Origin: Cercozoa sp. M6MM
Taxonomy: Eukaryota > Protista > Endomyxa: Ascetosporea
Assembly: GCA_040357565.1 (NCBI GenBank)
Contig: JBDODJ010000064.1
Strand: one strand, 5' to 3'
DNA: 61,948 bases
Part shown: positions 2,084 through 22,656 of the stretch, in pieces
Position numbering within the stretch: position 1 is the stretch's first letter
How the letters are laid out: each line of letters starts with the position of its first letter
Program-made: the position numbers and the translations under genes
Notes under the pieces: model-generated
The model's input: only the letters and a program-made list of their open reading frames with translations
What the model was told of the DNA's origin: nothing
Database searches by the model: none

Positions 2084-3231
2084 ATGCCAGGCAAGTTGAA
2101 AAAGTCGAAGAAGAAGGGTGCCAAGAAGAAGGGCAAAAAGGCTGCCAAGCTGCCCACCGACGAGCCTCTAACAGCTGCACAGGAGAACCTTTTGCTGAAA
2201 GCTCAAATACAATCGCTAAAGCAACAGGTACAAGCTCTGCACGAGCTGCAGCAACGTTCTGAAGCGGTGGTGAGAAAGTATCGTGCGCGCATGATTGAGG
2301 TAGAAATAGATATGGATTCCTTAAAACTCTTTTAAATCGTCGTGACGTTAAGTTGTTTTGTCCAGCTCGACGAGTTGGTGCTGGAGGAACGAGCTCGTGC
2401 TGTTGACGTGACAGCAGACCTCAATCGGCAGATCGACATTGTACGAGAAACGATGCGCGACCAACTCGACAGTTCGCGCGACGAACTCACGTCGTTGCAC
2501 AATGAAATGCGTACAGTAGAATATAAAACTTTACTTTTCTCTCAACTTTTGGCATTCACCAAGCGTCTGATTGAGCAGAGAGCAAATGCGCCGCAAAGGA
2601 CGAAATCATCACCGACCAACAGCGCATGATTCAGCAGCGCGACGCGCAGATCCGCGAGTGGAGAATCAAGTTTGCCGACGCAACACGGGAGTTTGAAACA
2701 ATGCTGCAGGCCACGCTCGCGAAAATGTCCGAAAGGATCGAGGTCGATGTTGTCGATCCCGAAGTTGCCGAGTACCATTGCCTTTCAGTATCTTTTCTTG
2801 ACTATCACTTCGGACTGGTACTTGCAGACTGACCGGACGCGCTTCGGCACGCTATTCTTTGATCTCTGCAGCGAAAGCGAGAGAAGAAGGCTTGAATTCA
2901 AGTTTAGACGTGAGTCAAAAACGTTTGAAACCTCCGAGTCTTTGTTACTTGTGCGTGTGTGCCACAGCGACGCAAATCGAAAAGTGCGCGTCGCTTGCGC
3001 GAGTCATCACTCATGGCGCAAACGTCGGTGCCGGTCATTTCTATGGCAAGAGGCGGCACCAGCGAATCACAGTCTGCGGCAACAGACGCCGGTACTTCCA
3101 GTTCTGCAACAATTGATCCAACTGCACACTTAATGTTCTCGATAGAATTAGAGATCTCCAGCCAAAGCGCGCGCGAAGCTGATGAGGTTGCGTCGCTGTC
3201 GAGTAGTCGACTTTCCTACGATGCGCCGTAG
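2084..3231 (+). CDS. CCDC153: Coiled-coil flagellar protein, CCDC153/DRC12-like (dynein regulatory complex), with low-complexity C-terminal extension
   Basis: Lys-rich N-terminus MPGKLKKSKKKGAKKKGKK, coiled coil ...DVTADLNRQ...QQRDAQIREWRIKFADATREFETMLQATLAKMSERI follows the CCDC153 pattern; about 5 GT-AG introns; stop TAG at 3231. Confidence 0.72.
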
Positions 3232-3689
3232 ATGGCACATATTTTATCGCAGCTTCCTTCCATTAAACGCAAATTTAAGCCACTAAACCCTAATATACGT
3301 TAAAATAGCACACGGATGCACACGTGCATTAGCGCCTGTAGAATATCGAAAGGTGCCAGCGGAGCGCCGGCCCCAGGTACGGCAACAAAGAAACAAAAAC
3401 CAGTTCACAATAAATTCCGCATTTGTCGCTTCTAGACGTCAAGTGTCCTTCGGTACCCAGGCTTATACTTGTGTGATTTCTGTGCGCGTGCTGTTTTCCC
3501 GAAGCATTTTTTGCGGCTTGGTGCGCACCGGCTGGACCCGGTCAGCGCATGCCCACACATGTGTTTTCGTGTGTGTTTTCGTGTGGGAGTGCGTTTGTGC
3601 CAAGCACGGTGCTGGTTTTGTGTGTGCTGTGTTTTTGTTGGATGTTGTTACACTGGGCGTTTTTGCAGGGTTAAAGAACAAGAACTAAA

Positions 3690-4072
3690 ATGCGTTTCGT
3701 TGCTGCCTACCTGCTCCTGACGCTCGCCGGCAAGAAGGCCGACGCCGAGTCGATCAAGGCCCTGTTCGAGAAGACGGGCGTCTCTGTCGATGAGGAGAAG
3801 CTCAACAAGCTCGTCGCCGAGCTCGAGGGCAAGGACCTCGACGCTCTGGTCGCTGAGGGTCTCGAGAAGGTCGGCACCGTCGCCGTCGCCGCTGGTGGCG
3901 CTTCGGCTGGTGCCGCTGCCGGTGGTGCCGCTGAGGAGGTATTTCCCTGATCTTGTAAACTTGCTCGTGGTGTACGTTGTGATGATCGTGTTTGCGCCAG
4001 GCCGTCGCCGAGGAGGAGGAAGAAGAGGAGGAGGAGTCCGAGGAGGAGATGGGCTTCGGCGGTCTTTTCTAA
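3690..4072 (+). CDS. RPLP2: 60S acidic ribosomal protein P2
   Basis: MRFVAAYLLLTLAG...ELEGKDLDALVAEGLEKV, Ala/Gly hinge, intron 3939-4000, then AVAEEEEEEEEESEEEMGFGGLF* (TAA 4070-4072). Probable 5'-UTR intron ending ttttgcag at 3668. Confidence 0.97.
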
Positions 4073-4497: not shown

Positions 4498-5375
4498 GTT
4501 GCAGCCACCGCTGCCACCCACGTACATGCAATAAACAGTACGACAACGAGGCTAAAGCGACAGCATTTGAGTTTGAAGTGAAAAGAGCAGCCACGCAAAG
4601 GGTGACGGTCATGTCATGTCTTTCGGCTGGCGTGCCAATGCTCTTTCAATTTCTTCGTACTGTCAGCTCTTGCACTTTGAACCGCGAGCCAGGCAAGCCA
4701 CCCGCATCTACAAGCGACGAATGAGTCGCCGCACGTCATCGATCGATCCGTTCCCGGTCGGTATGACAGATATTACTCTAATTCACGGCAAGCGTTTACA
4801 ATAGTTCGTTTAATCTCCTAAGAAATCTACCATGTGGTTTTCCGCCTGCACCAACCATGAAGTCGACTTCGTTGTCTGGGGAACGTCAGAAGGGGAGTTG
4901 TATGGCCCTATGTTATATATATGAGAGCAGAAGAAAGTGCGCTTGGAAGAGATCGACACGGCCATTGCTGAGCTGACGAAAACTGTGGCCGGCAACGACA
5001 GGGGCATCCTCGCGCAAACTGAAACTCGTGCTGTATTGACAGGATGTGCCGGACCTGGTGGACTTGCCAGGCATCACTCCTACGCTACCGTATGCGGGCG
5101 CAACGTAGACATGACCATGGACTTGTGACCCACCCGGACTGGTGCAGGGGAACAACTTAGCTTAGTTGTTTCAGATACGATAAGGCGAAGACTCAACAAA
5201 CAAACCGAACTAAACTCTCTCTGTGTCAAGTTGAGCGCTTGAGGCGGCCGTGTTGATACCAGTTGCAGTGAACTCACTGAGCGTATTGTTGTCACTGTAG
5301 CCGTTAACATCGGTGCGACTGCCAAGAGTGCGATTGATAGACTCGTGCATCGGCAGTGGCGATTCATCGAACGAC

Positions 5376-8300
5376 TCAGTTTCCGACTTTGCACGGACAA
5401 GCGACCGGCTAACTCAAGAGAAGACAAAATAAATGATGAAGCTACCTTAAACAACGGTAGGTAGTCTTCATCCCGGAATGGCACCAAACGAGCGTCGCAC
5501 GACAGCGAACGTCGCTGCCTTCGCGTATCCGCCTGCAGACAAAGACATGCATGCGATTTATCCGTCTAAATGTGACGTACCGAGGAGACACGCCGCTTCG
5601 CGTTACGACGACGCGTGAGTCGCTGCCACCGCGAGCTTTTCTGCACAACAACATCACTGCCTCTTCCAATGCCCTCTTAAGAAAGAAGCGAGAGAAAGTA
5701 CCTCCTCGCTGGGACCAGGCGACGCAACCGGCGTGTTCAAGCTCACTCCGCGGAAACACGGATCGTCGGCTTCTATGTACCATACAACCTTACAAACGTA
5801 CTTTCACACACACCAAAAGCACACAAAATCAGAGTGAACTACCGAGACCAAACAAGCAGCGCGCATGCATGAGGAAACACACGGGTGCCACCACCTCCAA
5901 AAAACGTCGCAGTGTCTGTGCCTCTTCCTGAACATGATGCGTCACCACTACCCTGACATAACATGTCTATCATATGTCTAAAAACTGAAACATACCAAGT
6001 TGGCGATGGCAGTACACCGGTGCGTCGCATCGCTCAGTGCTCGCCAGTATCGTCTCTGTACACAAAAGCAAGAAACTAAAAATCAAAAGAGAAAAACCAA
6101 AGCAGGTACTGCATCGCACGGCGACGGCGACGTCACACGATGCAACGGTGCCACCACATCGCCTAATAAATCAAACAAACTGCATACGCAATAACAAAAG
6201 AAGAACAGGCAACAGTAGAAACCGTAAAGTCGCAAGAAAAGTCGTTTTCGCTGCTTTCGCGTTTTCGCACTTGCCGTTGCAAACTGTAAAACCAGTTTAA
6301 ACTCTTCAACTTTAATTTGTGGAAAGCGACACGAGAACAGAGAAAAAAGTACATCCAGGTCTGCGGCGATCGTAAACAGTGTACGCAGTGTGTGCGGCAC
6401 TCGATGCGCCTGTTCGGGACAGAGAATGCCAAAAAAATTTACGAGTCTAAAACGGGAGATTTACGAGGCGGTGTCGCCGCTGACGCTCAGTCGGTGGTCG
6501 GACGACGTTTGCTACCACGTGCAAGTGGCCTTCCTGCAATCAAATTAGTTGAACACACAGGCTACGAGCATAACTATAAAACTACCTCGTCATCTTCTTC
6601 AGTTTCCTCTTCTTCGTCATCCTCATCTGAAGCAACAACACAACTCAAGTGCAACCTCAGTCAACAACGGCAGAAAAACTCTGCGAACCAATGCAAACGG
6701 CAGTTCGAACATGCCGAATGAAGTGTGCCATGAGTGCTTTGTTCTGTAGCAGTTTGCGGTCCATGTTTCTTAAGCTACGAGACCACAAACACGTTTGTTC
6801 GACCGATCAATCTGCAAAGCAAGTTAAATTACGAAAGCTGCGACACAAAAAGCGACATGAGGTTGGCATCGAGTTCGTTAGGCGCTACCGGTGAAGTCCA
6901 TCCCTGGTCAAACAAAAGCAAACACCATTTATTCTTATTCTGCAAAAGCACCAACGTTGTCGATCAAAAGGTGGTTCACCTCACGCAACAGACGCGCTAT
7001 GGCGAGACAATCGCTGAATCGCAGAGCCGACGCCAAACGACGTTGTTGCAGCGCCGGCCGATGCGCCGTCGAGTTGCCTATACAGTGTATCCATTCAATA
7101 CATTTCAACTGGCTTATAGTATTTGTATTGACCGAAAGATACCAAAATGCAGGCGATAGCGACACAAGAACATGGCCAAAGCGTAAGCGATTGCGTCGTG
7201 CCGTCTAAGGAGGTACCACTCACGCAGCAACACCTCATGAGGCAGTCGATTGACTCGTGGCAAAGTCTCGAGCGGAATCTCGACTCGATCCTGCAAAAAA
7301 GTTCGATTGAGTCAAAGAAAGACAACTAAAGTTCCACGCCACCTCAGCGAACGATGCTCGTCGGCGCAGTAGACCAAAAGGACGGCGCCACACCGATACT
7401 TCTCTTCCTGTCACGAACTTGGTCGTACATTGTTATTTTTTGTCCTTTCTACCGAGCACTAACTATTGATACCGATCGCGCGTTGAGATTGCCTGTCAGT
7501 GCCGATGCACGCCATCATCAAGGTTTGTAAGTTTCGCAACTGTCTCTGCTCAGCTAATTGCGTAAACTAGCAAGCGAGAAGTCAATTCGGGCATACCTGT
7601 GCTGTCACGAGACTAATGCCGTGCTGCTGGGCGCACTTTTGCACCATCTGTTTGAAAAACAATAAAAGAAAAAACTGAACTGAACTTATTAAACTACCTC
7701 CAGACACCGATTCGCCTTTTTTCGTTTTCTCACGTTCTCACCTACACATATCGATAGAACGAAACGGATCAAAGCGAAAAAACCGAAAAAGAAGTACCGA
7801 GAAGCACGCGCAAAAGTCGCCCATCAACAGCGAAATATGCTGCGACTTGGGCTGCATACTGCGCCGCCGGTACTGGATGCTCGAGCCTCTGTGCTTACAC
7901 TGATAAAAAGCAAGACTAGCACGCTTAAAGAGCGTGTCGTACAGAAAGAATCGACGGGTGTCGAAATGCGTGCTGCATGGCTTCACATGCTTGAAAAGTA
8001 GTTTCGATCTCGCGCGAGATGGCTGTGAAACACAGAAAAAATCGATTTAAAGTGACGACAAACTAAACAAAACCAAATTACCACTTTCGAGTCGTTCTCG
8101 AGCCTTTGCCGCGTCTTGTTCACTAAAACGCACTTCAAGTATTCCGATGGATACGTAGTGTAAAGCAAGTTTACGTGACATTGGAGTTCTCATGCACGGC
8201 GACAGAGCGTTCGTGGCGTGCCATATAGCTCCCATCCAAATGCAACTCGCTCAACGTGCGAACGTGGTGAGTAGACGCACCTCCTTCCACCTGCATTGGC

Positions 8301-8554
8301 GCATATTATCTCGATGCACCACGAGAACAACCGCATGAAATGAAATACACGGTATTGCTGTCGAAGCTGCTGCCGTAAGTCCTCGTTCACGAGTGCCTCC
8401 TCCAACGTCAGCCCTTGCCTGTGAATCCAACGTCGGACAAAAATAGAATGACATCAACAGGGTCCTACCGCCAGGAAGCTGCACAGGCATTATTCAAAAC
8501 CAGCGGGTCTATGACACTCGATGCGAACACGATGCAGGAGTCTAATGAGGGCAT
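5376..8554 (-). CDS. FIBP: Divergent FIBP-like protein (acidic FGF intracellular-binding protein family), about 20 exons; 3' end uncertain
   Basis: Spliced exons align by eye, in order, with human FIBP: ASWRQGLTLEEAL (LWLDGYSVTDAV), YFAVDGRLLRVLLG (YYAFDEAFVREVLG), HGISLVTAQRQLRNL (TGITLKSCRRQFDNF), WYLLRRHDAIAYALAMFLCRYRL ([23 protein letters not shown]), LRFSDCLAIARLLREGWT (LSFGDFAFCAELMIQNWT). Confidence 0.7.
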
Positions 8555-8781
8555 CTCCACCAGATTATATCGTGTTAGCACACCCAGGCAACCGTTGACC
8601 GGCTAAAATCCTCGTCTTCTTGAGCACTTGAAATCAATTCAACCGGCGTTCCGAATATTTAATAATAATATATTATTATTTATTCACGATCAGATTTTTG
8701 CGCTGTTTCGGGGCGGGGTTCTTGCGTTGAAAATTTCGTTTGTAGTATTAATTCTTGTGACATTTCGCCTGGACGACTTAG

Positions 8782-11069
8782 TTAACCAAAAGAAAAGAAG
8801 GTGCGACCGCCGCCGCCGTGCTGTCGCGTGAAACGGAAGCCTTGGAAAGGGTGTCCACCGTGGCCTGCCTGCTGCTGCTGCTGGAACGGGTCGCGTCCCG
8901 AGTCGTACAACGCACGCATCTCTTCGTTCGTCAGCTACAAGGAGGAAATGCGACCCAGAACACTTGACAAAGGCAAAGAAGCAAGGTACAACATCGTGCG
9001 CCTCGGTGATGTCCTGGAAGACACGTTTGGCAGTCTCCAGTGCCTCTGCATAGCACAAGGAAAACAAATACCAAGACTGATGCGATTTAAAAGCACGAAG
9101 ATACCATCAGCAGAGTCAAAGTAGACTGTGACGACATCGTCGTTAGACAAAAAGGCGCCCACACGGTCCGGGTGCAATCGGCGTGCCTGCTTTCGAAAAG
9201 CCTTCTTCACTTCCTTTTCCGTAGCCTAACATATACGATACGGTGGCTTCCAAACACGCATATGCGCACAGCGAAAGATACACGTTGTTGTAGTCCGAGT
9301 AGTTTGTAGTAGTCCTTTCGCGAAGCACGGTTCAACTGCTGCTCGACTTGACTGGCGAACTACCCCAAACACTATACATGGAGGGGAGAAAAAGAATCCC
9401 AATACCTGACGGAAGGAAGCATCGAGATCGGCGGCTTTTTTGGCGTCGGAGACAGCAGATTCGAGCAGGTCTAGACGCGTGTTGCCAGTCGCGAACTGCC
9501 GCAATTCGGCCAATACTGCGCCAGCTTTGTCTTGGCCAAGTTCAGTGCTTTTTTCGTCGCCCGTTTTGCTTTCTTTTTTGTCGCTGTTGTAAAGGTGCAG
9601 CGACGCACGTGCCCGAGTACGCAGAGCACGTGCACGAGTGCTATCATCAGTCGCGATGGAACCGTCGCACAGTGATTGACACACTTCGGTAGCACGCACC
9701 AGAGGCACGTGCTCACAGGCCTCCAACGCAGCTTCGCCCAGCAAGTGCTGCGAGGCATCGACGACACCTCGCAGTGTTTCTTCTGCTTCCTCCTGCAACG
9801 AAACAAATAAACAAAGATTAATCACAAAGAGTGAAAAGCTACGTATTGTCCATTTTGTCGCTGTTTTCGGTACTTTTTGAGTTGCTTGTGCAGCACCATT
9901 AGTGCTTTGTGCGATCTACACGATACAGAGTACATGCTGTACCTACGTTTGTACAGAAAGTAGCATACGGGTCACTTCGAAGACCTTCTCGCAGGTACTT
10001 TGCGGCTGCCTCGCTGCAAAACAACACACGTGCAGACACAAGGGAGTGCGAATGTACTATGGTACAGGTTGGAATCTCTTGCGAGTGCAACACGCGCTCG
10101 CAATAGCAAAGCCTGCGTTTGACGCATCATTCTCTTTACCTTCAAAATAAAGAGTTAAAGTGGGTACATCTGAATCGAGTGCTTTCTGTCTCAACAGAAG
10201 GTTCACGTCTAACAACGCTTCGTCGAGAGCCTGTTATAGACCAGAAAGCATGCCAAAACTACCAGCACAAGCTCAAAGCAGAAACTAACAGAAACTACCA
10301 GATTGCTAAGATGACAAGTTGCACGTTGGATCAGGAATTTCCGGTTGTAAGGCGCCAGTGTGAGAAAGGCATTCCGTGCTGCAGTGGTAGACACTTCGCA
10401 AGGGTCGCTATCCCGGCGTTTCTCCAATGCGGTTAAAGCACGTTTGCACTCGTCAGCGCGAACACGTGAGCTCTCATCAGTCGCGACATTGAGAGCTGCA
10501 TCACACTCGCCAAGTTTGATTAAGGTTTTGGCGCGGAACTTTTGGATTTTCGCACGCGCATTGTCGTCTTTCGCGTGTTGCAAAGCCTACAGAATTGAAT
10601 CTACTTTTTCTTGAAGCTGTGGTTCGACATATTTTGTCGCCAGCCTCGCGATCACAAAGGAAGAGTACCTCATTGAGATCAGCGAGGGCTTTTTGAACTT
10701 GTTTCTGCACGGTGAGTGCTTGTGCTCTTTTGTAAAGCAGAGCCTGCACACACCGATGCATGAACAAACAAAGTCGAAACTAATCCAGTTTCAAAAAAGC
10801 TTACATCGCGACGTGCCGACAGATTCACTGCATTCTCTCGACCGAGTTCTTTCAGTGCTTCTGTAAGCTTCTTGATGGCTGAAAAATAGTGCAAATACCA
10901 ACGACTAAATACACAAGCGAAGCCAAGGAAAGGTACCGATTTTATAATCGCCGAGTTTAAACGCGTTTTTTGCTTCCTCGCTCAGCAAGTCCGCGCTCTT
11001 GGCTTGCGCCCAGCAAAGCATTAGCGCGTGCACGCCGAGAAGTACGCGAAGTAGCATGAGAAGCCTCAT
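8782..11069 (-). CDS. DNAJC3: ER-lumenal TPR + J-domain co-chaperone, DNAJC3/P58IPK-like
   Basis: Signal peptide MRLLMLLRVLLGVHALMLCWAQA; TPR-like helices (ALLYKRAQAL...KALADLNE; YLREGLRSDP); J domain KDYYKLLGL...EVKKAFRKQARRLHPDR...FQDITEAHDV-LTNEEMRALYDSGRDP; tail GGHPFQGFRF...FFSFG*. Confidence 0.88.
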
Positions 11070-11369: not shown

Positions 11370-14300
11370 ATGTGGGAACTAGTGTTATCGGTGCTTCTGG
11401 TCACCTCCGCACCCGCACGCGGCGTGATAACCCGTAATTTTTGATCTTTCGTCGAAGCAGGCTTTTGGATTTTGATTTTTGTGCTTAGTGAACTCATGGG
11501 AGTCGGTGCCATCGTACGGCGTAGACATTCGCTACGTTTATGGCTGTCTAATCGAGACTCTGTTGTCGGGAGCATCGTCAGCGGTTTACACCAGTAAAAC
11601 GACATTCGTCGATCACCTGGCGCTTCCGACTTCATATGTCCAGCGTGAGTACGTCGACTCGGTATCACTTTGTTCTTTTCGTTCTGAAAATGTGTCTTTT
11701 TCGGAGTTTTGCCTCCTCGCTTTGCCTCGCTCTTTTCATGTCGCTGACTATTCCTTGGTATGATGGAAGCGCAGAAGGAATGCATGGACCATGCCTATTC
11801 GAGTTCCGAGTCATTGGACGGCAAACGCCTCGCAATGGCCTACGCTGAGGCGCAGTTGCACGCTGAAAAGCGTAAACGAAACCTCCTAACTATTGTTGAT
11901 CTAGTTTCTTCGCGTGTTTTACTCAATAGTTTTACCCTAATTGCATATACCTTATGTAGCTTCCCTCAACACACTTGAGGCTAGTCTGGACAAGGACGAT
12001 AACGGTGCCCGTTATGTTTACATGTACACAACAAGTTCATCGCCCGTGTTTTCGACGAGCACACTGGTGGGCTCCGTACCGAATACGGCCGATAACGGAG
12101 ACAGAGCCTTGGTAAAGGCCAAACTGTTCTCGACACGAAGTGTAAATACCATCTGTCGTTTAGGTGACTCGAACTGTTGCTTCCGCAACGCTCCTCTCAA
12201 TTGAAATCGTCGGCTTTGGTTCGAGTTACGACGTTCATGTGAAATGCACATCGGACAAAAACGGGTATGAAGGAGGGACAACTTGGTACCGTCCGTTGCA
12301 CCCGGAAACTCGTCCCGTCGCCCCAGCTGTACCCAGTTTTTTGAAGAAAGAAAATGCTGCCCGATACACAGGCAGCTTTCAGAAAAATTGAATCACTTTC
12401 AGGTCGCATGGTCGGGATCGACTGCCTCTGTTCAAGTGCAATACGATCTGCCAACAACACTAACTGACGTGCTTCCTGCACACAGTGATGACAAACTGCT
12501 CCTCGGCTTTGACATTCTGACTGCTGATGGCAATACTGTCACTACGAGTGCCACGTTTGATGTTACCGACTCTTCCAGAGTACGACTATCCCACAATTAA
12601 ATCTGCGTTCCAGGCAGAAGAGACAAATGTACCACGCTGATAGGTGTTGGCACAACTGCCAATTGCGAATTCCGTCAACGAAACCACGAGTGTCTCAATA
12701 GGCAAGCACCTGACCGAGTGTCGAGCATTGGGACTGGTCCCTGCGCTGCTGACACCGCGTTTTGCACGTGCTTTTGTAAGACTGTCTCTTCTCTTTAAGC
12801 TGCAGCGAAAATTCTCGTTGATCTGGTCAGGAAGTGATCACTTACTTTGATGGCAACTTGGGCACGCGCACAAGCACCTGGTACAACAGCGCAGCCGACA
12901 CGACAGTGAGTGCATTCAGCTTCCCGTGTGTACCATCCTCGGTGGTGAAAGACACTGATTGGTCGATTGCGTGCGACACTGAGGTGGGCGGAGCTTGTGT
13001 GCCAACTCTGCTGAATAGTGACTTCATCGCACTCGACGCTGCCAGCAATCAGTGGACGTTCACCTTTCAGTTCGCTTGCAGCGGCTACAGCACTATAAGC
13101 GGCATCTCGTCCGGTGGCCATGTGGTACAGTTTACTACATTTACCACCGCATCTCAGTTCTTGCTTGTCGAGCTAGAGTATGAAACCTGAGGTGTATTCA
13201 GTTGCTTCCGGGCGACGTCTCTTGTACCGTCAGCATGGTTGCAGAAGGCCCAAGCACGAACATTCTCATGTCGGCGGGCACGGTCTCTGTCTCTTCGTTT
13301 AGCACAACGATCCTCACACGCTCCACCTGGGGTGCACGTCATGATGCCTTTAACGGGTAGTCCTATATTTCACCCATTAAAGGCAGATGTTTGCATTCCT
13401 GACCTGCAGAGTGTTGTACGCCAATGTGCCTACCTTCCTGGATGAAGCATCGGCACAGGTACAATATCAGATCCGCGTGGAACACCTGGGCTCACAGCTC
13501 TCGAATTGCGGAGTCGACGCTGCCATCGTCTCAAGCGATGAAATTGCTTTGCCTTTGGTATGTTTTTTGATCGGACCTTGAAGTAAAACCGACATCCAAC
13601 TGATTGATACGCACGTGTAGTCAAGTGACTGTCCCATACTGTTCGGTTCGGCTCATGTTAGTGTCGATGTATGTGTCCAAGCGAATCCGGGCACATCCGA
13701 CATTGGCCTCGGCGTCTTTGATGCAGTGAGTTTTCACAAACTATTATTGTTTTCTGCTTTTATATTCTCAATCTGTAGGCTTGCACGACAGTAGAGATAC
13801 TGGACATGTCGAATGCTCCAGTTGTGGACACTTGGACCAGTGCGTGGGGTCTACAGTACAAGATCTCACAAGGCTGCCTCTATGAGTCAGACAACCCGAC
13901 AACCGTGCAGTCTTTCAACACAGCTGGCAACTGTCTTTCCACCAGCGGCACTGCCAATCGCGTTGCTGCCTTCCTTGCTGGCGAAGCTTTGTTGGTACAG
14001 CTACATTTGATTCGATTAACATCATTGCACTATGTTGCTGCAGGGGGAAACGAGTGCTCAACCAGACGAACAAGTGCGCTACGTGCAGTTCAACATGAGT
14101 GCCTCTGTTGCCGACGACGTTGTCATGAGTATCAATGTGCACTCTTTCACGAGTGCTTTCGTAGCAAGTCTGCTCGACAATAATACGGTACTTGGGTTGA
14201 GTTCTATCTGTGTATGCTTGTTATACTGCGTGTTGACAGTCGGTGGCACCTCACACAAGTGTGAGAGTAGTGGCGGCAGTTCCAACAGACGCATTCATGC

Positions 14301-17300
14301 TGGGCGTAGAGTATTCTGTTCCCTACGTCCCTTCGGCAACGGCAACGACAGGCACTGGATGCGACTTTTACAAGTACGCCTGGCCAAGTGCTACTCATTG
14401 CTACGACGCTTCCACATCTTGGGCGAAGCCACTAATGCTGGAAGTGCGACCAGAGACACCGAGCATTTCGTTCGATGCTCTGCAAGCGCAGTGGATCGAT
14501 GTGCAGTACGCATCGACTTCGCTCCCGACAGAACTGCAGGACTACACCGTCACTCTGACCAATGATACCATCGATGTCTCGTTCGACGCCGTCAACGCCT
14601 CGGGCACGACCACCAGTACAGCAATGCTGACTTCTCAGGGCTCGCTGTCACTTGACGCGCTTCTGACACTGTGCCGCTCCTTCTCCGGTACAGTTGCCTA
14701 TCTTCAGCTGTTTTATACACACATATCGTTTGATTTTCTCGGTTTAGAGATGGACAACACACTGGTGCAACCGTCAATTGAGCGCACATTCACAGCGCCC
14801 TATTACGTAGCACCACAACTTTATTTAAATTCATACTGGACCACGATTCTACTTATTTGTTCATACAGACACCGAGCACAATAACAGCGGGAGCAGTGGC
14901 ATCGAGTGACGCCGCCTTCCCTTGCATGAGCGCTCTCTTGCACAACGGAACTGATCTGTCGGTACAGTGTGACGCATACGCCTGCACTGTGGCACCTCTC
15001 GGGAACGTATCCTCTCTGGTGTCGATGTTGGACAACACTTTGTGGGCGCTGCAACTTGAAGTTGCGGGCAGTGTGCAAACCAAGACCTACAGTTACAGCA
15101 GTCGTCTGCTGCTGCCTGTCGATACCTACACAGTGACGGCAAAGACAATCTTTAACTCAAGCTTCTCCTTGTCAAGCACACTCATGTTCGGCGGCAGTCC
15201 GACTTTCAGTGTGTCTGACAACTTCCCAGCGATGACACTGAGTGCCTATCACAACGACACTGCCAACAGCCTTGTTGTCGAAGGCTTGCCTGTGCTCAAC
15301 GACGAATATTCCATCAACGTACCCACTGTTTTTGATACTCTATAAACACATCAGATTGTGGTTGCAGATTCCATACACGGTGTGGGTGGAGCAAGCCGGC
15401 ACCAATGTCACAGGATGCACGTGGACACAAACCCTGCCACTCGAACTTTCACTCTCCGTGTGCGTTGGACTGACCTACGACGCTGTTGCAACGCTCAAGG
15501 CGCGCGCCGTGCCGCTCAACAGTCAGTTCGGCGACGTGTACCCTGTGGTGCAGACCGACGTGCTGCTGCTGGCACAGACGAGTGTGCCCGTGTCACAAGT
15601 GTGGAACACTGCTGCCTCGTGGAACGTGCAGTATCGACTCGTGCCAGGTTGTGTCGTCACTGTCGATGGCACTCGCAGCATGATGGATGCCAGTGCGTGT
15701 TACAACAACGCTTTCACAGGCAGCAACAATGTCACGTTCGAGGCACTGTACGCAGCGACTGAGTTGCGACGCGAGCATGTGCACGACATTGACAGTTCCG
15801 TCAGTAGCAACGTGTCCAGCAGCAGCACGGAGTTCTCGCTGCTCGCGTTCGATTTGAACGGCACCAGCAACTACACTCTTGCTGCCACCAGTGAGCAGGT
15901 CGTGGAGCTGTGGCCCAGCACTACCGTATCGCAGTTTGATCTGTTGAGATTGAGGATCGCCGAAAGCTACGGCGTGGCATTCTCTGCTGGTTTGGGGTGC
16001 GTGCTCGTGCTGTCAGACAACACGACTACGTGCTATGACGTTTCGTTTGGTGCTTATGCTGCACCTTTGAGGTTTGAGTTGCGTCCGCTGGTATGCCACA
16101 CAGTTACTTTGACCCTCGACTAGTTGTTGGCTCTGTCAAGTGAATCATTGTTTCCACTGTGAACTGCAGGCACCAGTCGTATTAGCCTCTAACGCCAGCA
16201 TTTCACTGCAAACAACTGTGCCTGCACTTCCAGAGGCAGTATCTGCCTCGAGCGTTCCACTGGACAACGAATGCTCTGTGATTTGCTTTGACACGCTGAA
16301 TGCTTCGGACTTGAGTGTCGTTTCAAGTGGCACCTGTACCCAAAACAGCGCGAATGTCGGTGAACTCGTAAGCGTCGAAGAAATGATGATTGCTTGTCGC
16401 GCGGATGCACACCAAAATAAAATTGTTCGACCTCGGTTCGCACGCATATTCTCGACTTTCGTCGAGGGCAGCAGCACCTGGAACTCGGTCAGCGAGCTGA
16501 GTGCCGTTGTCGCAGACACCTATTTCCCCTGCCTGTCGGAGACTGTACCCAACAGTACGCTGGTGTCGGTGACTTGCGACGCATTCGCATTTTGTCAAGT
16601 TATCTTGCTGAACAATGCACTGGTGCCGAACAACTCAGCTTGGTCGCTCAGTGTGCGCGTCACCAGTGGAAGCGATACCCGCGCGTACCAACCTACGAGT
16701 AAAATCCTGTTGCCGGTCGGTTCCGCAACGATGCAGCTGGTGGCACACAATACTATCACTCTCGTCGACATCGTGAGTCTTATGGACAACGTCACTGTCG
16801 AGAACAACTTTGACGTGTCACCCAGCGCCTATCACAATGCTACTTCTGCCACACTGGTGCTCGAAAATCTGCCCGAACTGACAGATGAAGCGTCGGCAGC
16901 CATTCTCTATACGGTGTGGCTACAGCAAGGGGGGTTAAATGTGACTGCATGCACATGGACTCAAACGCCTCCTTTCGTCTTGTCCCTCGCTTCGTGTGTT
17001 GGGCTTACATACGACACTGTCGCAACAGTGAGAGCACGTGCTATGCCCTCGAACAGTCAGTTCGGTGACGTGTATCCCACCGTGGAGACCGAAATCGTGC
17101 TGCTTTCGCCAAGCAGTGTCGTGCTTGACTCATGGGTCCTCATGCCAACCTGGAACGTGCTGTACCGACTCGTGAGCGGCTGTTACGACTCAAACACGCC
17201 GACGCAGGAGTGCTTCCCCAGCGAAAGCAACGATATCGTTGCGCTGTTTGCTGTGAGTGAACTGCGACGACATCACATTGACAGCATCGATTTGCAGGGT

Positions 17301-20300
17301 CAAGTATTCATGGAGGCTTACGACGTGGCTGGCACTGGCACTTTCAACAGTTCCAACGGTCACCTGGAGTTGTGGCCAAGCACGCAGATCTCTCACTGGG
17401 ATATCGCCTCCGTCCATACCAACAGTAGCACATGCAGCATGACCGTCAACAATGTCGGCACTCCGATCACGTGTAATGACACCAACGTGTCTCCCTACGT
17501 GACACCGCTGCGAATGGAGGTAGAGCCATTGATACCGACGGTTTCGGTTAGTGCCGACGGCAGCATGAGTCTCAGCATGCCGACGGTTTCAGTGCCGAGT
17601 CATGTCTATTTGCCTCCGTACACCGACACTGTCGAACTCTGCCTCGACACCGATATCGCATGTGAGGCAACATCGAGCTCGGTTTCATTTGATTCTGTAC
17701 TTGAATGGTGTCGCCGACATGTGCACAATGCGCCTGTGTATCCTCGTTTCCGCCGCGTGTTCCAAACGGGGTCGAAAAACTTCTCTGGCGCGCTTACGTC
17801 CACGAGCGATAGCTATGAGCTGCCTTGCTTTGCGTCGCACTTGTAAGCTGCAGTAATAAAAAGTGTGAAGTGTTGTACCAAAAGTATTTGTTGCATAGGA
17901 GCAGCAGTGAAACTGCGATTGTGTGCGATCCAGTGTTCGGGGGTATTTGCGATGTGAGTATTTATCTCGCAACTTCATGGTCGACGAAGCTACGGGTTCA
18001 CATGGACAACGACACGCAAACAGCAGCCGTGAACACTACACTCGTGCTGCCAGCAGGAACAAACACAATAGAACTGGTGACCTACGAGACGGACAAAGAA
18101 GTCGTATCGCTTGTCGAAACTGTCACAGTGCTGACTGTCACCAGTTTGCCCAGTGCACAACACGACTTCGAACTAGACACATTGAACATAACGGTGCTGC
18201 CTCTGACCATCGGTGGAACAGCAGTGCCCTATGACATTCGAATCGAGCAAAGCACCGGCGTCGTTTGCAGTCTCAATGCGACAACGAACCAAACGATTTT
18301 GCTGCCACTCGCGCTGTGCCCTGCCATCGATCGGTCGGATCCCGTGAGCGTCTACGCAGCACCTCGTGTGACTGCCTTGAATGGAGCCCCGTACCCTGCA
18401 TTGGAGGCACACAACGTCACTGTGAAACATCTATATGCCCCGTTGGCGCTTGTGGTTGAGGGCGGAACAAATCGCACACTGCCACATGGCGGTGCCTTGG
18501 TTCTCGACATCTCGTACTCGCACGACGTCGTCAACACGAGCAACACGGACAGATTTGATCTAACGCTGGTGTGCACAGCTAACGCGACGCAGATTCCGTG
18601 CAACTTTGTCGACTTCATAAGCAAGTTGCCGTCGCGGTTCAGCGTCGCCATCGCTGCCGATGCCTTGATTGGACCTTCGCTGTACACACTGCAAATCACA
18701 GTGACGGACTCACAGCGCGAAGTTCCCACCTCCTCAATGACAGTGTCGCTGTTGGTGTTGAAGCCAGTGCAGGCACCTGTGGTCTACGTTGCTGCTGCCA
18801 TTGCTTCTGGAACGACTGGCACGGACTCGCACGTCATTCCTGCCGTTTTGGACAATGAGTACATTCGAATTGAAGGCTCCGCTGCGCTTTCCGTGAATGG
18901 GCAACCTGCGGTGGCCGCTGACGATGAAACTCTCGCTTTGCACAATGTATAAAACACACTTTGTATGGGCAGTTTCTGTTATACATTTGCGTGCTAGGCG
19001 ACGCTCGTATGGACCAGCAACAGCGTCAACCTGAGCGAGGCGTCGGAAACAATGGCAACGATGCGAGCACTCACACTGCGAATGGAAGCACTGCCACAGA
19101 ACGTGCCACTCGAGGTTGAACTGCAAGCACACGTGCTGTTTTATGGCGAATGGACGCTCTCATCGAGTGTGACGGTTCAGTTCGAAGTGAGAAGCTCCGG
19201 CAACGTGACGATAAACGTCAGCAACGACACCAGCAGTCTCCTGCTCCACTATCTGTTCCATCAAGCAGCGCAAACCGTCTCCATTGATCGCAAGTCAAAA
19301 CGAAAGATACTGGCCTCTTGCAGTGGAGTACCATCGCAGGTGTCACGTGTGCAGATGCGCTACGTTAGCGTCATCGATGGTCTTGTGCTGCCCATCACGG
19401 AGTGGCAACAACAAACTTTCCCCAGAGGCCAACAGAAGCTGTCACTGCCGTCTTTTGATACCACACTGCTGCCGAACGGTGTCATGCGCATTTACGTTGA
19501 ACTGATGGACGATCGTGGAGGTGGCAGTGTGTCGGCGCCGCTCGATCTTTCGATCTTTGACGACGTGGCAACCTGGGACACCAAGTGTCAGGCCTACCTC
19601 GACGATCTCGCTGTACCACACAACACATAGATTTACACGTTATTTTAACTACGCTAGTGTGTAGAGCGTGACTGCAACTGACGTGCGGGAGTTGCATGCA
19701 GCATGGCGAGTGGCCCGCAGTCTCGCCTATGACGCCGACGGTGCCGAAGCGACAGACGCCACTGCAGGCGACCTCACGCAGAGTCAAACCTGCCGTCGCT
19801 TGTACAGGCGTCTGCAGTGGCGCTTGCTCCGCGTGCAAGCCAGCGTGGGTGCCTTCACACGCGGCAACCGACATTCGTCAGAGGGGTACGCGATTGAAAG
19901 TGACGACTCGCTCGAGCAGGTGCTCCAGTTGGGCAGCGACACGGCCAGCAGTGTCGCAGCACTCGGCTTTGGCTCGACGAGCACTACCAAAGCAACGGCT
20001 TCGTATAGTACGACCACAGCACCCACGACACACGACGATGTCAGCGACGCAGAGGATGAATCAATCGAAACCGTCGGCGCCTTTGTCGGAGCAGTCAAGC
20101 GCCTCGCGCGTCCTTCCAGAGTACTGGGCAGTCTCACTTTTGACTGTACATTAATTTGGCAATAAATTTACAAATGTGATACAAGTAGAACCTGGTGCGC
20201 AACGTGGCTTCTGGACTGGGACAAGTGCTGCATGGCTCACGCCGCCGCTACACGCGTCGCCGCGCGAGTTTGCTGCAAGAAAGTCCCACGACCTTCGGCG

Positions 20301-22656
20301 AGGAGGTGCGGCACTGCATCTTGATGAACTGGGCGCTCAAGCAGGCTCAGCACCTACTCAAGGCGCAGGCGCGCGATATGCTCGGCGGCGAGCAGATCGA
20401 TCTGCACGAAATCTACGGCATGAACCTTTCTGTCGTGAATGGAGACACACCGACGCAGCTCCAGGCGGCGCGAGTGCAGGTGTATGACATTCTTCGCTCG
20501 AACCAAAGTGGCACTACCCCGACGTCTGTGTACAATGGCACCGCCTCCAGTACCGGTCTTGGTCGATCGACGCTGTCACTCCGAGTGGTGCAGTTGTCGC
20601 CGGAACTCTTCAAAGAAACCACCAACTGTCTGGCAGGTCACCGACCTCGCACGGTGTGTTGCTTTCTCTTCTTGATTTTTCTCGTTTAAACTCGTATTTT
20701 GTGGCTCCTAGGTGGACCGCATGGTGCCGCAACGTGCCTGCGGAATCGTGTCGATCGAGAGTGACTCGACAGTGAAAGACGTGTCACTGGACCCGTGTGC
20801 AGCTGGTCCTGTCAGTGACACCGCGGAGGACGTCGAATGCGTGTTCTGGACGGGTACAATCTGGAGTACGGAAGGCTGCGTCACGGAGCGTTCGGCTTCG
20901 GGCGTTCTCCAGTGCCGCTGCTCGCACCTGACCACCTTCGCTGTGGCCCGTCGACTCGTCGCGGAAGTGCAGAACGCCATGCTTGTACTCTTTACTCCCT
21001 CAACATGAGTAGCATAGTACGCTTTGCTGTCTGCAGAATGGCACGGAATCGCGAATGTCGATTCTGCAGTCGATGCATGCACTGCCACAAGAGGCAAAAC
21101 TGCCTCTCTTTGTTATTGGCGGTTTCTATGGCGCGATCTTCCTGGTCGGTATCGTGATCACGGTGCCACTGGCGCTGTCGCTACGCAGTCGACAGTCGCG
21201 ATTGTCGGGATCCGGCACCTCAATGTCGCTGCTGTCCGCATCAACGAAATCGCTGGTGAAGCGCGTGAGTCGGCGAACTCGGCGTCGTGCCTTTCTGCTG
21301 TCCGGTGTCACCACGCTGCTGGCCGGCATGCGCACAGGCAGCACACTCGTGTTGGCACTGTCGCTCGGAGAGGACGGCGTCCCCAGCGACATTGTGTCGC
21401 AAATTGTCGGTCTCGTGGTGTCGGCTTTGCCTGACGCACTCAAGTATTGGGCACTCTCCTGGGTCGTCATCGAGTGGGCCGCCATCTGTCACTGTACATT
21501 TCCCTTTGTCTTTTTAGTGATTGTGGAAACCTATGCTTTCATGTATAATTCAAAGTCTGCATGCGGCACTCGGCGAATCCGACGCGACCGCTGCAGCGAG
21601 TGTTTCTTGGCGCCAACAGCTCAGTTTCGCTTATCATTTCGGGAATAATGATTGCTGCTGCCGCACTCCTGCTGAGTGACTCAACGTATCAGCAACTCTC
21701 TGTGGTTATCTCGCTGCTCAACATCGGCAGCATTCTGCTCTGCCTCGCATCGGCGGCCACATGTGCCGCCTTCCTGTTGTACGGCTCTCTGCTGGCGCGC
21801 AAGCTGTGGCGCGAACACCGCCGACAGTACGCGAACCCGCAACCCGTCGTGCACATGCTGCTGATGAAGCGACCCGAAGACGAAAACAGCGACATGGACC
21901 CGTACCATTTACTATCTTCAAGCTTTCTTTGGAGTGTAAAATTGTATTGGTTTGCTTGCAAGCAGAGCGAAAAAGAAATTGTTAGAAGCGCTCATTGGCG
22001 CCGCTTCGCGCGTGCGACGCTTTGTTCTGACGCCGATGCAAGCGCGTACCTGGGCGCGTCTCCGCGGCTCCATCTTCCGCCTGTACGTTTAGTTTACTCA
22101 CTGCCTGTGTGGTATCAGTGTGGTGTGCACACACAGATTTGGAATCTCGAGTGTCGTTGCGACGCTGATGTTGCTGAATGCCTCGATCACGCTGTTCGCT
22201 CTGATGGCAAAGGAGATCTCGGAACGCACACTGATGCATGTCTTCCTGGTGTCGCTGTCGCTCGACGCGATGTTGTTTGCCTTCTTCCTCGTGCTGCAAA
22301 GCAAGGTACCTCAGTTCTTATGTTGTAAAGGACGCTGCCCTCACCGTTCCACCTGCACGTTTCAGACACTACGCGCACACCAAGCAGCCACACGGGCCTA
22401 CCGCTCCACCATGTCGGAGAGTAACTCCACCAGCACCGGTGACAAGACTTCCATCCCAACCCACGACGACCTGATCGCCAAGAAGGCACGAGCACTGCGA
22501 CAGGTACCTTTTGGTGACTTCAATTGTCATTTTATTTGGTAAACACCATCTTGGTAGGAGCAAGTGCGCCAAGCCAAACGCGCACGCCGTCGTGTGCAGG
22601 TGAACCTCAAGCTCAAAGCAGCGACCACACAGGAACACCCGCCTAGGCAAGACTAA
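11370..22656 (+). CDS. Giant adhesion-receptor-like protein: signal peptide, 4 large repeated modules, REJ/PKD-like region, GAIN/GPS, 7TM (roughly 3,000 aa, estimated)
   Basis: ATG 11370 MWELVLSVLLVTSAPARG; continuous chain of + strand exons joined by GT-AG introns; REJ-like PLALVVEGGTNRTLPHGGALVLDISYSHD (~18440); GPS at 20838-20946; seven hydrophobic segments 21100-22300; stop TAA 22654-22656. Confidence 0.82.
20838..20946 (+). other. GPS (GPCR proteolysis site) motif with intact HL|T cleavage triad
   Basis: CVFWTGTIWSTEGCVTERSASGVLQCRCSHLTTFAV matches the GPS consensus C-x-x-W...W...GC...C-x-C-x-H-L-T-x-F-A-V. Confidence 0.95.

Follow-up and report, generated by a model that had tools for sequence, protein, structure and literature searches.

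A giant GAIN/GPS receptor, probably new in kind, in the marine amoeba Lemnamoeba sinaloensis

Results

A 29-exon gene with a repetitive ectodomain

The window analysed here is a stretch of 61,948 nucleotides from Lemnamoeba sinaloensis (earlier named Cercozoa sp. M6MM), a rhizarian and marine amoeba. It carries the gene for a protein of 3,185 aa, annotated as hypothetical protein MHM6MM_002728 (NCBI MES1910067.1) and termed P0001 below. When P0001 was mapped onto the window, each junction had a unique GT..AG solution, all 28 introns being GT..AG and 49-113 nt in size, and a phmmer protein search found exon 24 to be 100% identical to P0001. The first-pass annotation had placed the feature at 18435-22656; its end coincides with the end of the P0001 stop codon at 22656, whereas the exon map moves the beginning of the gene to 11370.

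11370..22656, plus strand: whole gene, 29 exons and 28 introns, encoding P0001
11370..11433, plus strand: exon 1, with the start codon and, at residues 4-22, a hydrophobic signal peptide, Kyte-Doolittle 1.81 (hydropathy)
11960..17842, plus strand: ectodomain modules, about four tandem copies of about 450-500 aa each, rich in Cys and N-glycosylation sites (self-BLAST)
about 18413..18745, plus strand: faint REJ likeness within exon 19, covering 74-196 of the 452 positions of the REJ profile (PF02010 scan)

The ectodomain is about 2,700 aa long and contains 45 NxS/T sequons and 61 Cys over its whole length. Self-BLAST brings out its modules as repeats spaced by about 500 aa (strongest pair 902-1185 against 1392-1646, E 3e-59), and a Pfam scan of the exons and of whole P0001 returned no match to them. 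A REJ-like region had been noted ahead of the GPS motif and read as part of a polycystin-like ectodomain. Such a region is weakly present, as PF02010 matches exon 19 alone with E 0.0037 and 16.4 bits against a cut-off of 25, but neither the whole-P0001 scan nor the six-frame genome search reports it at this gene. The only solid REJ domain of the genome belongs to a different GPS gene on contig C188, whose ectodomain has no BLAST similarity to that of the window protein. With REJ below threshold here and the solid copy elsewhere, the polycystin-like REJ ectodomain did not hold up, and a REJ domain is not established in this gene.

An intact GPS motif directly before the membrane domain

19665..20984, plus strand: presumed GAIN-like juxtamembrane domain, exons 21-23, P0001 residues about 2335-2744 (judged from its size and from where it lies with respect to the GPS motif)
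20835..20945, plus strand: GPS motif, Pfam PF01825 (Pfam profile searches)
20928..20933, plus strand: predicted autoproteolysis site L2726 / T2727 (L 20928-20930, T 20931-20933), preceded by H2725 (direct reading)

The intact GPS motif of the first reading was borne out by profile searches, in which PF01825 matched the exon stretch 20712-21005 (E 1e-11, 45.6 bits, cut-off 22.5), the interval 20835-20945 in the six-frame genome search (46.9 bits) and whole P0001 (E 1.7e-9). Read directly, the motif is C..W......W....C...........C.C.H-L/T-T-F-A-V, with four of four Cys, both Trp and the H-L/T site present. The stalk downstream of the predicted cut starts T-T-F-A-V-A-R-R-L-V; the TxFAV stalk consensus was taken from PMC12716839. 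In phmmer searches of PDB sequences the GPS matched nothing but the C-terminal ends of adhesion-GPCR GAIN domains (ADGRE5, E 3e-5, with the alignment reaching 20 aa upstream of the motif), and likeness to the GPS gene on C188 reaches about 40 aa upstream (E 1.8e-5). By eye, the first part of residues ~2335-2744 is helix-prone and holds a low-complexity S/T insert, and the juxtamembrane part ending in the GPS motif is strand-prone; we infer that this region folds as a GAIN-like domain. A single-sequence AlphaFold model of the GPS-associated domain from C188 was poor (pLDDT 40.6).

Between the GPS and TM1 exons lies a single 52-nt GT..AG intron that keeps the frame, and the paralogue on contig C23 has its GPS motif and its TM1 within one unbroken open frame. 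Both observations support the assignment of GPS and 7TM to one gene in the predicted gene model, as had been proposed; the spacing, put at about 30 aa, is 41 residues from the predicted cleavage site to TM1 in the annotated splice form. TM1-3 share exon 24 of the window gene and TM4-5 share exon 25.

Layout of the seven-helix domain

21100..21183, plus strand: TM1, residues about 2766-2793, exon 24 (hydropathy)
21289..21366, plus strand: TM2, residues about 2829-2854, after a 37-aa Arg-rich loop (hydropathy)
21388..21493, plus strand: TM3, residues about 2862-2896, family motif LP..L.YWA...V..WA.I.HF (tblastn, alignment, genome searches)
21606..21791, plus strand: TM4 (about 2914-2936) and TM5 (about 2944-2975, FLLYG motif at its end), exon 25 (hydropathy, ESM-Atlas)
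21792..22136, plus strand: long, basic third inner loop of ~75 aa, running from the end of exon 25 through exon 26 and across two introns (16 K+R against 7 D+E)
22137..22299, plus strand: TM6 (about 3050-3075) and TM7 (about 3083-3105), exon 27 (hydropathy)
22300..22656, plus strand: predicted cytosolic tail, basic, 81 aa with 18 K+R, exons 27-29, with the stop codon (P0001 sequence, exon map)

The seven hydrophobic segments reported after the GPS motif are recovered as seven Kyte-Doolittle peaks (TM1 2.36, TM2 1.24, TM3 1.37, TM4 2.26, TM5 2.10, TM6 1.97 and TM7 2.47), with K/R-rich loops in alternation (ICL1, ICL3 and the tail, 16-18 K+R each); the presumed outer loops are short and acidic or neutral. 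Because of this positive-inside pattern we predict an N-out/C-in topology, with the ectodomain outside or luminal and the tail cytosolic. A TM3-ECL2 Cys pair and a TM4 Trp are hallmarks of class A and class B GPCRs; in P0001, as read directly, the short outer loops are free of Cys and TM4 lacks Trp.

Kinship of the seven-helix domain

That this 7TM is neither of the secretin/adhesion type nor of the polycystin type, as first suggested, was upheld: PF00002 (7tm_2), Dicty_CAR and PKD_channel (PF08016) gave no match on P0001 even at E<=10, no PLAT domain was found in P0001, and the helices number only seven. In PDB sequence searches, none of the solved adhesion-GPCR, secretin or polycystin membrane domains matched the P0001 7TM beyond the GPS. 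PF00002 also had no match in the six-frame genome search, which works exon by exon and was equally silent on the control genomes, so that this genome-wide result does not demonstrate absence.

The TM3 and TM5 motifs, which we take to resemble those of the THH1/TOM1/TOM3-GPR137 family, had been read as a sign of kinship. This likeness stands in part, through weak PF06454 (THH1_TOM1-3) matches in paralogues and through ESM-Atlas neighbours, but P0001 itself has no PF06454 match and every profile score lies below cut-off. When the TM3-ICL2 exon of the paralogues on C632 and C23 is scanned, PF06454 ranks first among Pfam families (E 2.5e-4 to 1e-3, 19-21 bits, cut-off 25). The match covers positions 82-148 of the 273 in the profile; by our own estimate, which spaces seven helices proportionally over that length, this is about where helix three and loop two would fall. 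Because this exon is so similar between the two loci (82% identity, or 91% over a shorter alignment), the matches are treated as a single observation. An unrelated bacterial family, DUF4153, is matched by this exon as well (E 2e-3), and the other paralogue exons have no PF06454 match. Window exon 24 matches ICE2 at 19.4 bits, surely spuriously, so scores of this size arise by chance on membrane helices. In the ESM-Atlas, GPR137_N/THH1_TOM1-3 clusters come first among the named neighbours of exon 24 (0.90, with 177 features in common) and likewise of exon 25 (0.88, with 172), values at or under the 0.9 line, which the tool itself grades as a lead only; the top-ranked matches of exon 24 are unnamed clusters, and GPR137/TOM1 agreement appears in three of the ten best family-bearing matches of exon 25. 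On these comparisons the 7TM does not appear to be of adhesion type; its closest likeness, weakly, is to the GPR137/TOM1 group, and membership in that group is unproven.

Paralogues and genome context

The GPS+7TM module occurs at four loci, the window gene and contigs C23, C632 and C88, each with H-L-T-T-F-A followed by the same 7TM in collinear helix order. TM3 is the best conserved segment across the four (tblastn E 1e-10 to 1e-11 against C23 and C632), the paralogue TM3 being 42% identical to that of the window. The three paralogues differ from the window gene in their much shorter, unrelated ectodomains, in a distance of ~20-25 rather than 41 residues from cleavage site to TM1, and in their larger number of introns, one of which falls exactly at the H-L/T junction in C632 and C88. 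Stalk positions 6-7 are A-R in the window protein and V-K in the paralogues, against L-M in adhesion-GPCR agonists. No relatives turned up beyond this genome in a phmmer search of 1.84 billion representatives, in word-indexed searches or in metagenome scans. The genome also holds >15 G-alpha loci, and its PKD_channel matches are confined to contigs C7 and C596.

Discussion

In the analysis by Arac et al., GAIN always sits directly ahead of the first TM helix, and only two membrane families were known to use it (PMC3321182); the linkage of GAIN to a 7TM has been reported as restricted to the adhesion GPCRs of holozoans (PMC12716839). With adhesion GPCRs (class B2) the window protein shares a big modular ectodomain, the same GPS Cys/Trp/H-L-T pattern right before seven helices, the T-x-F-A-V stalk start, an N-out topology and an organism equipped with G-alpha proteins. 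It differs in having no 7tm_2 signal, no readable class B or A hallmarks, A-R instead of L-M at stalk positions 6-7, no HRM or other metazoan adhesion domains, and a rhizarian rather than a holozoan host. Polycystin-1 and PKDREJ likewise have a GPS adjoining the first TM helix and a giant repetitive ectodomain, with a REJ domain that is faintly echoed here, and for PC1, too, a tethered agonist of the stalk type has been put forward (PMC11458180), but they carry 11 TM and PLAT. The THH1/TOM1/TOM3-GPR137 family (PF06454, PF27607) offers seven helices of similar spacing, the best Pfam match of the paralogue TM3 exon and the ESM neighbours of two window exons; its members, however, are ~290-400 aa long without extra domains (PMC12716839), against an ectodomain of ~2,700 aa plus GPS. 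In the literature searched, the pairing of a GPS with a GPR137/TOM1-like 7TM is undescribed.

We interpret the window protein as a real GAIN/GPS receptor, probably new in kind. At somewhat better than even probability, we read it as a giant, type-I-oriented, seven-pass receptor in which a GAIN module is joined to a divergent GPR137/THH1-TOM1 7TM, self-cleaving and signalling upon mechanical pull or shedding. An unlikely alternative keeps the GPS/GAIN and takes the 7TM for a lineage-specific orphan, its TM3 LP...W..I.H and TM5 FLLYG likeness being chance or convergence. No profile attains its cut-off on the 7TM, spurious matches of similar size (ICE2, DUF4153, 7tm_7) fall on the same segments, exon 24 ranks unnamed clusters highest, and no homologue of any sort was found outside the genome; yet three non-overlapping segments from two divergent paralogues each point to the same small family group among thousands in Pfam and the Atlas, the PF06454 match falls near the third-helix positions of our proportional estimate, and that profile matched 0 of ~14 other TM-containing stretches scanned. 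It is improbable that the protein is a genuine adhesion GPCR whose class B 7TM has diverged to an extreme degree, which would make GAIN-7TM older than Holozoa: a GAIN/GPS right before a 7TM is the defining layout of that class, the stalk start resembles its tethered agonist (PMC12716839), adhesion GPCRs supply all the best PDB matches of its GPS and G-alpha genes are many, but PF00002 is silent on P0001 (and, as a weak negative shared by the controls, genome-wide), PDB adhesion/secretin 7TMs match nothing past the GPS, the ESM neighbours are of GPR137/TOM1/TPRA1 type rather than 7tm_2, and the Cys pair and Trp are absent.

GPR137B and TOM1 reside on lysosome and vacuole membranes. The same architecture could, though we think it rather unlikely, sit in an endolysosomal or phagosomal membrane, where a luminal glycosylated coat would protect or sense, the GPS would serve folding or shedding, and the 7TM would regulate nutrient or trafficking signals and not G proteins. 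GPR137 is reported to be lysosomal and to act on mTORC1 (PMC12716839), the host is a phagotrophic amoeba (PMC13746701), heavy glycosylation is predicted from the 45 sequons and stalk positions 6-7 are non-hydrophobic; repeated large Cys-rich modules, however, are more usual in surface adhesion proteins, and this reading hinges on the unproven GPR137/TOM1 kinship. A polycystin-1-like protein, with REJ, GPS and a multi-pass channel-associated membrane domain, is very improbable and already largely refuted: the weak REJ match in exon 19 and the REJ+GPS gene on C188 favour it, against a sub-cut-off REJ missing from the whole-protein scan, only seven helices, a PLAT-free first inner loop of 37 aa, PKD_channel found only outside this gene, and a C188 ectodomain dissimilar to this one. 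Hardly credible is an annotation artefact fusing the gene of an extracellular GPS protein with a separate neighbouring 7TM gene; P0001 does come from automatic annotation of a draft assembly, but the exon gap is just 52 nt with canonical splice sites and frame kept, C23 reads through without interruption, the GPS-to-7TM order is repeated at four loci, and all known GPS domains require a downstream TM helix (PMC3321182).

Under the self-cleaving receptor reading that we favour, the GPS would lie within a GAIN-type fold and biosynthesis would include a cut of the chain between L2726 and T2727, after which the N-terminal fragment would remain bound to the membrane fragment, a very divergent GPR137/THH1-TOM1 member of GPCR fold, via the buried T-T-F-A-V strand. 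A pull on the ectodomain, or its shedding, as the cell adheres to a substrate, to prey or to the surface of a host would then free or move the stalk; the shift would change the state of the 7TM and send a signal inward through the long basic third loop and tail, with some member of the organism's large G-alpha set as a possible downstream partner. If true, this would place the GAIN autoproteolytic module on a third membrane scaffold, beside adhesion GPCRs and polycystin-1.

Gene model and the GPS-7TM junction

The GPS-7TM gene is real. A phmmer search of 1.84 billion representative proteins with exon 24, which encodes TM1-3, returned a single match, at 100% identity, namely P0001, a database protein of 3,185 aa (NCBI MES1910067.1, 'hypothetical protein MHM6MM_002728 [Cercozoa sp. 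M6MM]'), and no relative from outside the M6MM genome. Mapped onto the window, P0001 occupies 29 exons and ends at the stop codon 22654-22656, and the GPS-7TM part lies in the 3' third of this far larger gene. Its 28 introns measure 49-113 nt, and at each junction only one GT..AG choice yields the protein sequence. When the last eight exons were read directly in the raw sequence, the result matched the database model save for minor donor and acceptor choices. The splicing described here is deduced from the sequence itself and from the NCBI model, and the database searches used either single exons or P0001 as retrieved.

Features of the window gene and of related loci (window positions unless a contig of the M6MM assembly is named)
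11370-22656, + strand: window gene encoding P0001
20835-20945, + strand: GPS motif (PF01825, 46.9 bits in a six-frame genome search)
20928-20930 and 20931-20933, + strand: codons of L2726 and T2727, flanking the predicted cut
C23 54359-54574 and C632 3241-3480: TM3 exons of two paralogous genes, 82-91% identical to each other (protein)
C188:4000-13999, about 5154-9999 of that stretch, minus strand: a separate gene with REJ (E 4e-19) and GPS

Because the exons for GPS and TM1 are joined in frame across a 52-nt intron with canonical splice sites, because the same order recurs at three other loci, and because the GPS motif, stalk and TM1 lie within one unbroken open frame on C23, the sequence argues strongly that GPS and 7TM belong to one gene, as the first-pass annotation had proposed.

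Two further open frames lie in the window. The one at 386-1250 is acyltransferase-like (with an IFPEGTC block) and is broken by a run of N; the gap is flanked by poly-proline-coding repeats, which fit the SSR-bounded contig breaks reported for the assembly (PMC13746701). The other, at 3675-3947, resembles 60S acidic ribosomal protein P2 and has the usual N-terminus of that protein and a hinge rich in Ala and Gly.

An intact GPS motif with a predicted cleavage site

The GPS motif is recognized by PF01825 well above the Pfam cut-off of 22.5 bits, both on its exon (E 1e-11, 45.6 bits) and on whole P0001 (E 1.7e-9, 38.4 bits). Direct reading of residues 2696-2727 finds all four conserved cysteines, both tryptophans and the H-L↓T triad, after which the chain continues as T-T-F-A-V; the predicted cut falls between L2726 and T2727. 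The intact motif described by the earlier annotation is thus borne out, as is its juxtamembrane position, immediately upstream of the first TM helix; the distance of about 30 residues given there was slightly short, since the annotated splice form places 41 residues between T2727 and TM1. That the GAIN domain adjoins the first TM helix is a stated rule for these proteins (PMC3321182).

The only PDB sequence matches to the GPS region are GAIN C-termini of adhesion GPCRs, with ADGRE5 at E 3e-5. A full GAIN fold spans ~320 aa, with a helical subdomain A and a beta subdomain B that holds the last strand. Complex prediction of the presumed GAIN N-terminal fragment (2335-2726) with the stalk (2727-2768) gave scores of 0.19, 0.48 and 0.11 (mark 0.34), which speak neither for nor against the fold, and AlphaFold run without an alignment on the 530-aa GPS open frame of C188, a relative and not the window gene, gave a pLDDT of 40.6, too low for the model to be of use. 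The stalk, T-T-F-A-V-A-R, keeps five of the seven positions of TxFAVLM, the adhesion-GPCR consensus (PMC12716839), and has lost the hydrophobic positions 6-7, which read A-R in the window gene and V-K in its paralogues.

Paralogous loci within the M6MM genome

The TM3 motif of the window gene matches three other contigs, C23, C632 and C88, each with a GPS just upstream, and the H-L-S/T cleavage triad is kept at all four loci. The TM3-ICL2 exons of C632 and C23 are homologous to the window TM3 (42% identity, E 1e-10 to 1e-11), and for most helix-to-helix junctions one or more of the four genes has both sides of the junction in a single unbroken exon. The C23 and C632 copies may reflect a recent duplication, or may represent a single locus present in two versions in this draft assembly, which is SSR-fragmented. 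In C632 (about 2770-2820) and C88 (31000-40999, about 5320-5360 of that stretch), as read from frame translations alone, an intron apparently lies exactly between the H-L and T-T-F-A codons, where the cut is predicted; no such intron is present in C23 or in the window gene.

Word-indexed searches with P0001 2600-3185, the exon-24 stretch and the C632 TM3 stretch, which covered a fixed window of protein lengths, returned the protein itself and no relatives outside M6MM, and two metagenome scans returned nothing. The family joining GPS and 7TM appears limited to the M6MM lineage so far, so its general reach is limited until relatives turn up.

The seven-helix domain

Downstream of the GPS lie seven hydrophobic peaks, five of them strong, with TM2 and TM3 more amphipathic, in keeping with the seven segments first noted from sequence. 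Charge alternates along the loops in a way that suits a seven-pass protein with N-out, C-in topology: 16-18 K+R are found in each of ICL1, ICL3 and the tail, against acidic or neutral short outer loops. Class A and class B receptors normally carry an outer-loop cysteine and a TM4 tryptophan; on direct reading, the short outer loops here have no cysteine and TM4 no tryptophan.

As to what kind of bundle this is, P0001 has no match at E<=10 to 7tm_2 (PF00002), Dicty_CAR, PKD_channel or any other 7TM family, and the TM exons scanned singly have none either. Solved adhesion, secretin and polycystin membrane domains in the PDB match neither the protein, nor the TM1-3 exon, nor a TM3-exon profile. 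A six-frame genome search with PF00002 was also silent; the negative is weak, since that search treats exons singly and the controls likewise gave no match. The first inner loop is 37 aa long, has no Pfam match and holds no PLAT, and the helices number seven versus eleven in polycystin-1. From these comparisons, the sequence indicates that the window 7TM is not of adhesion or polycystin type, in agreement with the first reading. A hyper-divergent class B receptor would account for the GPS placed directly before a 7TM and for the T-x-F-A-V stalk start, both of which the window gene shares with adhesion GPCRs; adhesion GPCRs, however, have 7tm_2 and a hydrophobic L-M at stalk positions 6-7, while the window gene gives no 7tm_2 signal and has A-R there, and we regard this origin as very improbable.

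The likeness to the TOM1/GPR137 family proposed by the first-pass annotation was drawn from motif resemblance in TM3 and TM5; a text search of papers did not find the TOM1 motif strings. PF06454 (THH1_TOM1-3_dom) is nevertheless the best Pfam family for the TM3-ICL2 exon of C632 and C23, at 19-21 bits (E 2.5e-4 to 1e-3), below its gathering score of 25 bits; the two matches count once because the exons are 82-91% identical. The alignment covers profile positions 82-148 of 273, which, on our estimate from proportional spacing of seven helices, would roughly correspond to the third helix and second loop. The nearest named ESM-Atlas neighbours of exon 24 (0.90, 177 shared features) and of exon 25, which encodes TM4-5 (0.88, 172 shared features), are GPR137_N/THH1_TOM1-3 clusters, although for exon 25 only three of the ten best family-bearing hits agree on GPR137/TOM1; we treat these neighbours as leads only. 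The C632/C23 exon also matches the unrelated DUF4153 (E 2e-3), and an equally strong ICE2 match, surely spurious, falls on window exon 24; ICE2, DUF4153, 7tm_7 and DUF6541 were set aside as compositional.

The resemblance thus survives in part: PF06454 and the neighbours of two exons favour it, but none of the lines of evidence clears its own threshold, and PF06454 has no match on P0001 or in the six-frame genome search. Judged on sequence, the TOM1/GPR137 assignment is plausible and unproven, and a remote kinship of the window 7TM to this group is somewhat probable. The same sub-threshold scores would also suit an unrelated orphan 7TM, a reading that does not account for one small group of families recurring in the profile and in both exon neighbourhoods and that we consider unlikely.

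The ectodomain and the REJ question

The REJ-like region is the weak point of the first-pass annotation. PF02010 reaches 16.4 bits (E 0.0037; cut-off 25) on exon 19 alone, the match is lost in the whole-protein scan and in the six-frame genome search, and for the window gene the label is better dropped. The genome's only solid REJ (PF02010, 69 bits, E 4e-19) sits instead in the GPS gene on C188, where the GPS (E 1.4e-9) lies in a 530-aa single exon and is followed by different TM segments, without the TM3 motif. The C188 gene holds the organism's real polycystin-1/PKDREJ-like ectodomain; for the window gene a polycystin-like ectodomain is not supported. Polycystin-1 has REJ, PLAT in its first cytosolic loop and 11 TM; the window gene has a sub-threshold REJ, no PLAT and seven helices, and PF08016 (PKD_channel) matches in the genome lie on contigs C7 and C596 only. 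A polycystin-1/PKD1-like assignment is largely refuted on these points.

The remaining ectodomain consists of approximately four tandem copies of a ~450-500-aa module that has no Pfam match; the entire ectodomain carries 45 N-glycosylation sequons and 61 cysteines. The modules (window 11960-17842) are unequal in age: residues 902-1185 and 1392-1646 are 41% identical (E 3e-59), which points to a younger internal duplication, and the other pairs are 24-31% identical. BLAST found no similarity at E<0.1 between this ectodomain and those of C188, C23, C632 and C88.

A possible mode of action

By established GAIN biology (PMC3321182), the ~400 juxtamembrane residues would fold as a GAIN domain, the chain would cut itself between L2726 and T2727, and the two fragments would stay together through the buried T-T-F-A-V strand. 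With less confidence, we envision that the N-terminal fragment is pushed aside when the giant ectodomain is put under force or binds a ligand, that the 7TM is then switched, either by the stalk so released or because the ectodomain is gone, and that the switched 7TM may signal via its long basic third loop and tail. Classic tethered agonism is far from certain, because stalk positions 6-7 are A-R or V-K and not the hydrophobic L-M of adhesion-GPCR agonists. If the GPR137/TOM1 kinship is real, a serious functional rival would place the protein in endolysosomes or phagosomes, with its glycosylated domain turned to the lumen.

G-alpha (PF00503) gives 63 exon-level matches at more than 15 loci (e.g. 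C25:48939-49982, C28:85818-86845, C38, C213), a large repertoire for a genome of ~23.6-23.7 Mb. M6MM is a marine amphizoic amoeba of the Apofilosa, Rhizaria (23.7 Mb, 52.8% GC; PMC11069148), since described as Lemnamoeba sinaloensis; as it is in culture and has a chromosome-level genome (PMC13746701), cleavage, localisation and signalling are directly testable.

Relation to known GAIN/GPS receptors

Two membrane families are described as using GAIN/GPS, adhesion GPCRs and polycystin-1, in work that also found GAIN domains in Dictyostelium and Tetrahymena (PMC3321182). A 2025 choanoflagellate survey confines the GAIN/7TM linkage to holozoan adhesion GPCRs, dates it to stem holozoans and describes GPR137 as lacking accessory domains (PMC12716839). 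Among the papers searched, none describes GPS/GAIN together with THH1/TOM1/GPR137; InterPro architectures may already list the combination. The window gene is best filed among GAIN/GPS receptors, as a variant form. The more specific reading, a self-cleaving GAIN tethered-stalk module joined to a GPR137/TOM1-type 7TM outside animals and their relatives, is tentative, and we would not yet wager on it.

An intact GPS in a rhizarian, placed before a 7TM that is not of adhesion type, is relevant to the two-scaffold statement (PMC3321182) and also to the holozoan-only and GPR137 statements (PMC12716839), and would imply either independent recruitment of GAIN or a far older and more plastic GAIN-7TM partnership. 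If the specific reading is true, these genes would add an independent third class to the two kinds of self-cleaving receptor, adhesion GPCRs and polycystin-1, and the GAIN 'trigger' would be movable between unrelated 7TM scaffolds. Should the stalk activate this 7TM, tethered agonism would have arisen convergently, and for the orphan GPR137/TOM1 fold there would for the first time be a candidate ligand mechanism. The gene family also provides a natural test case for whether a GAIN stalk works on another kind of helix bundle.
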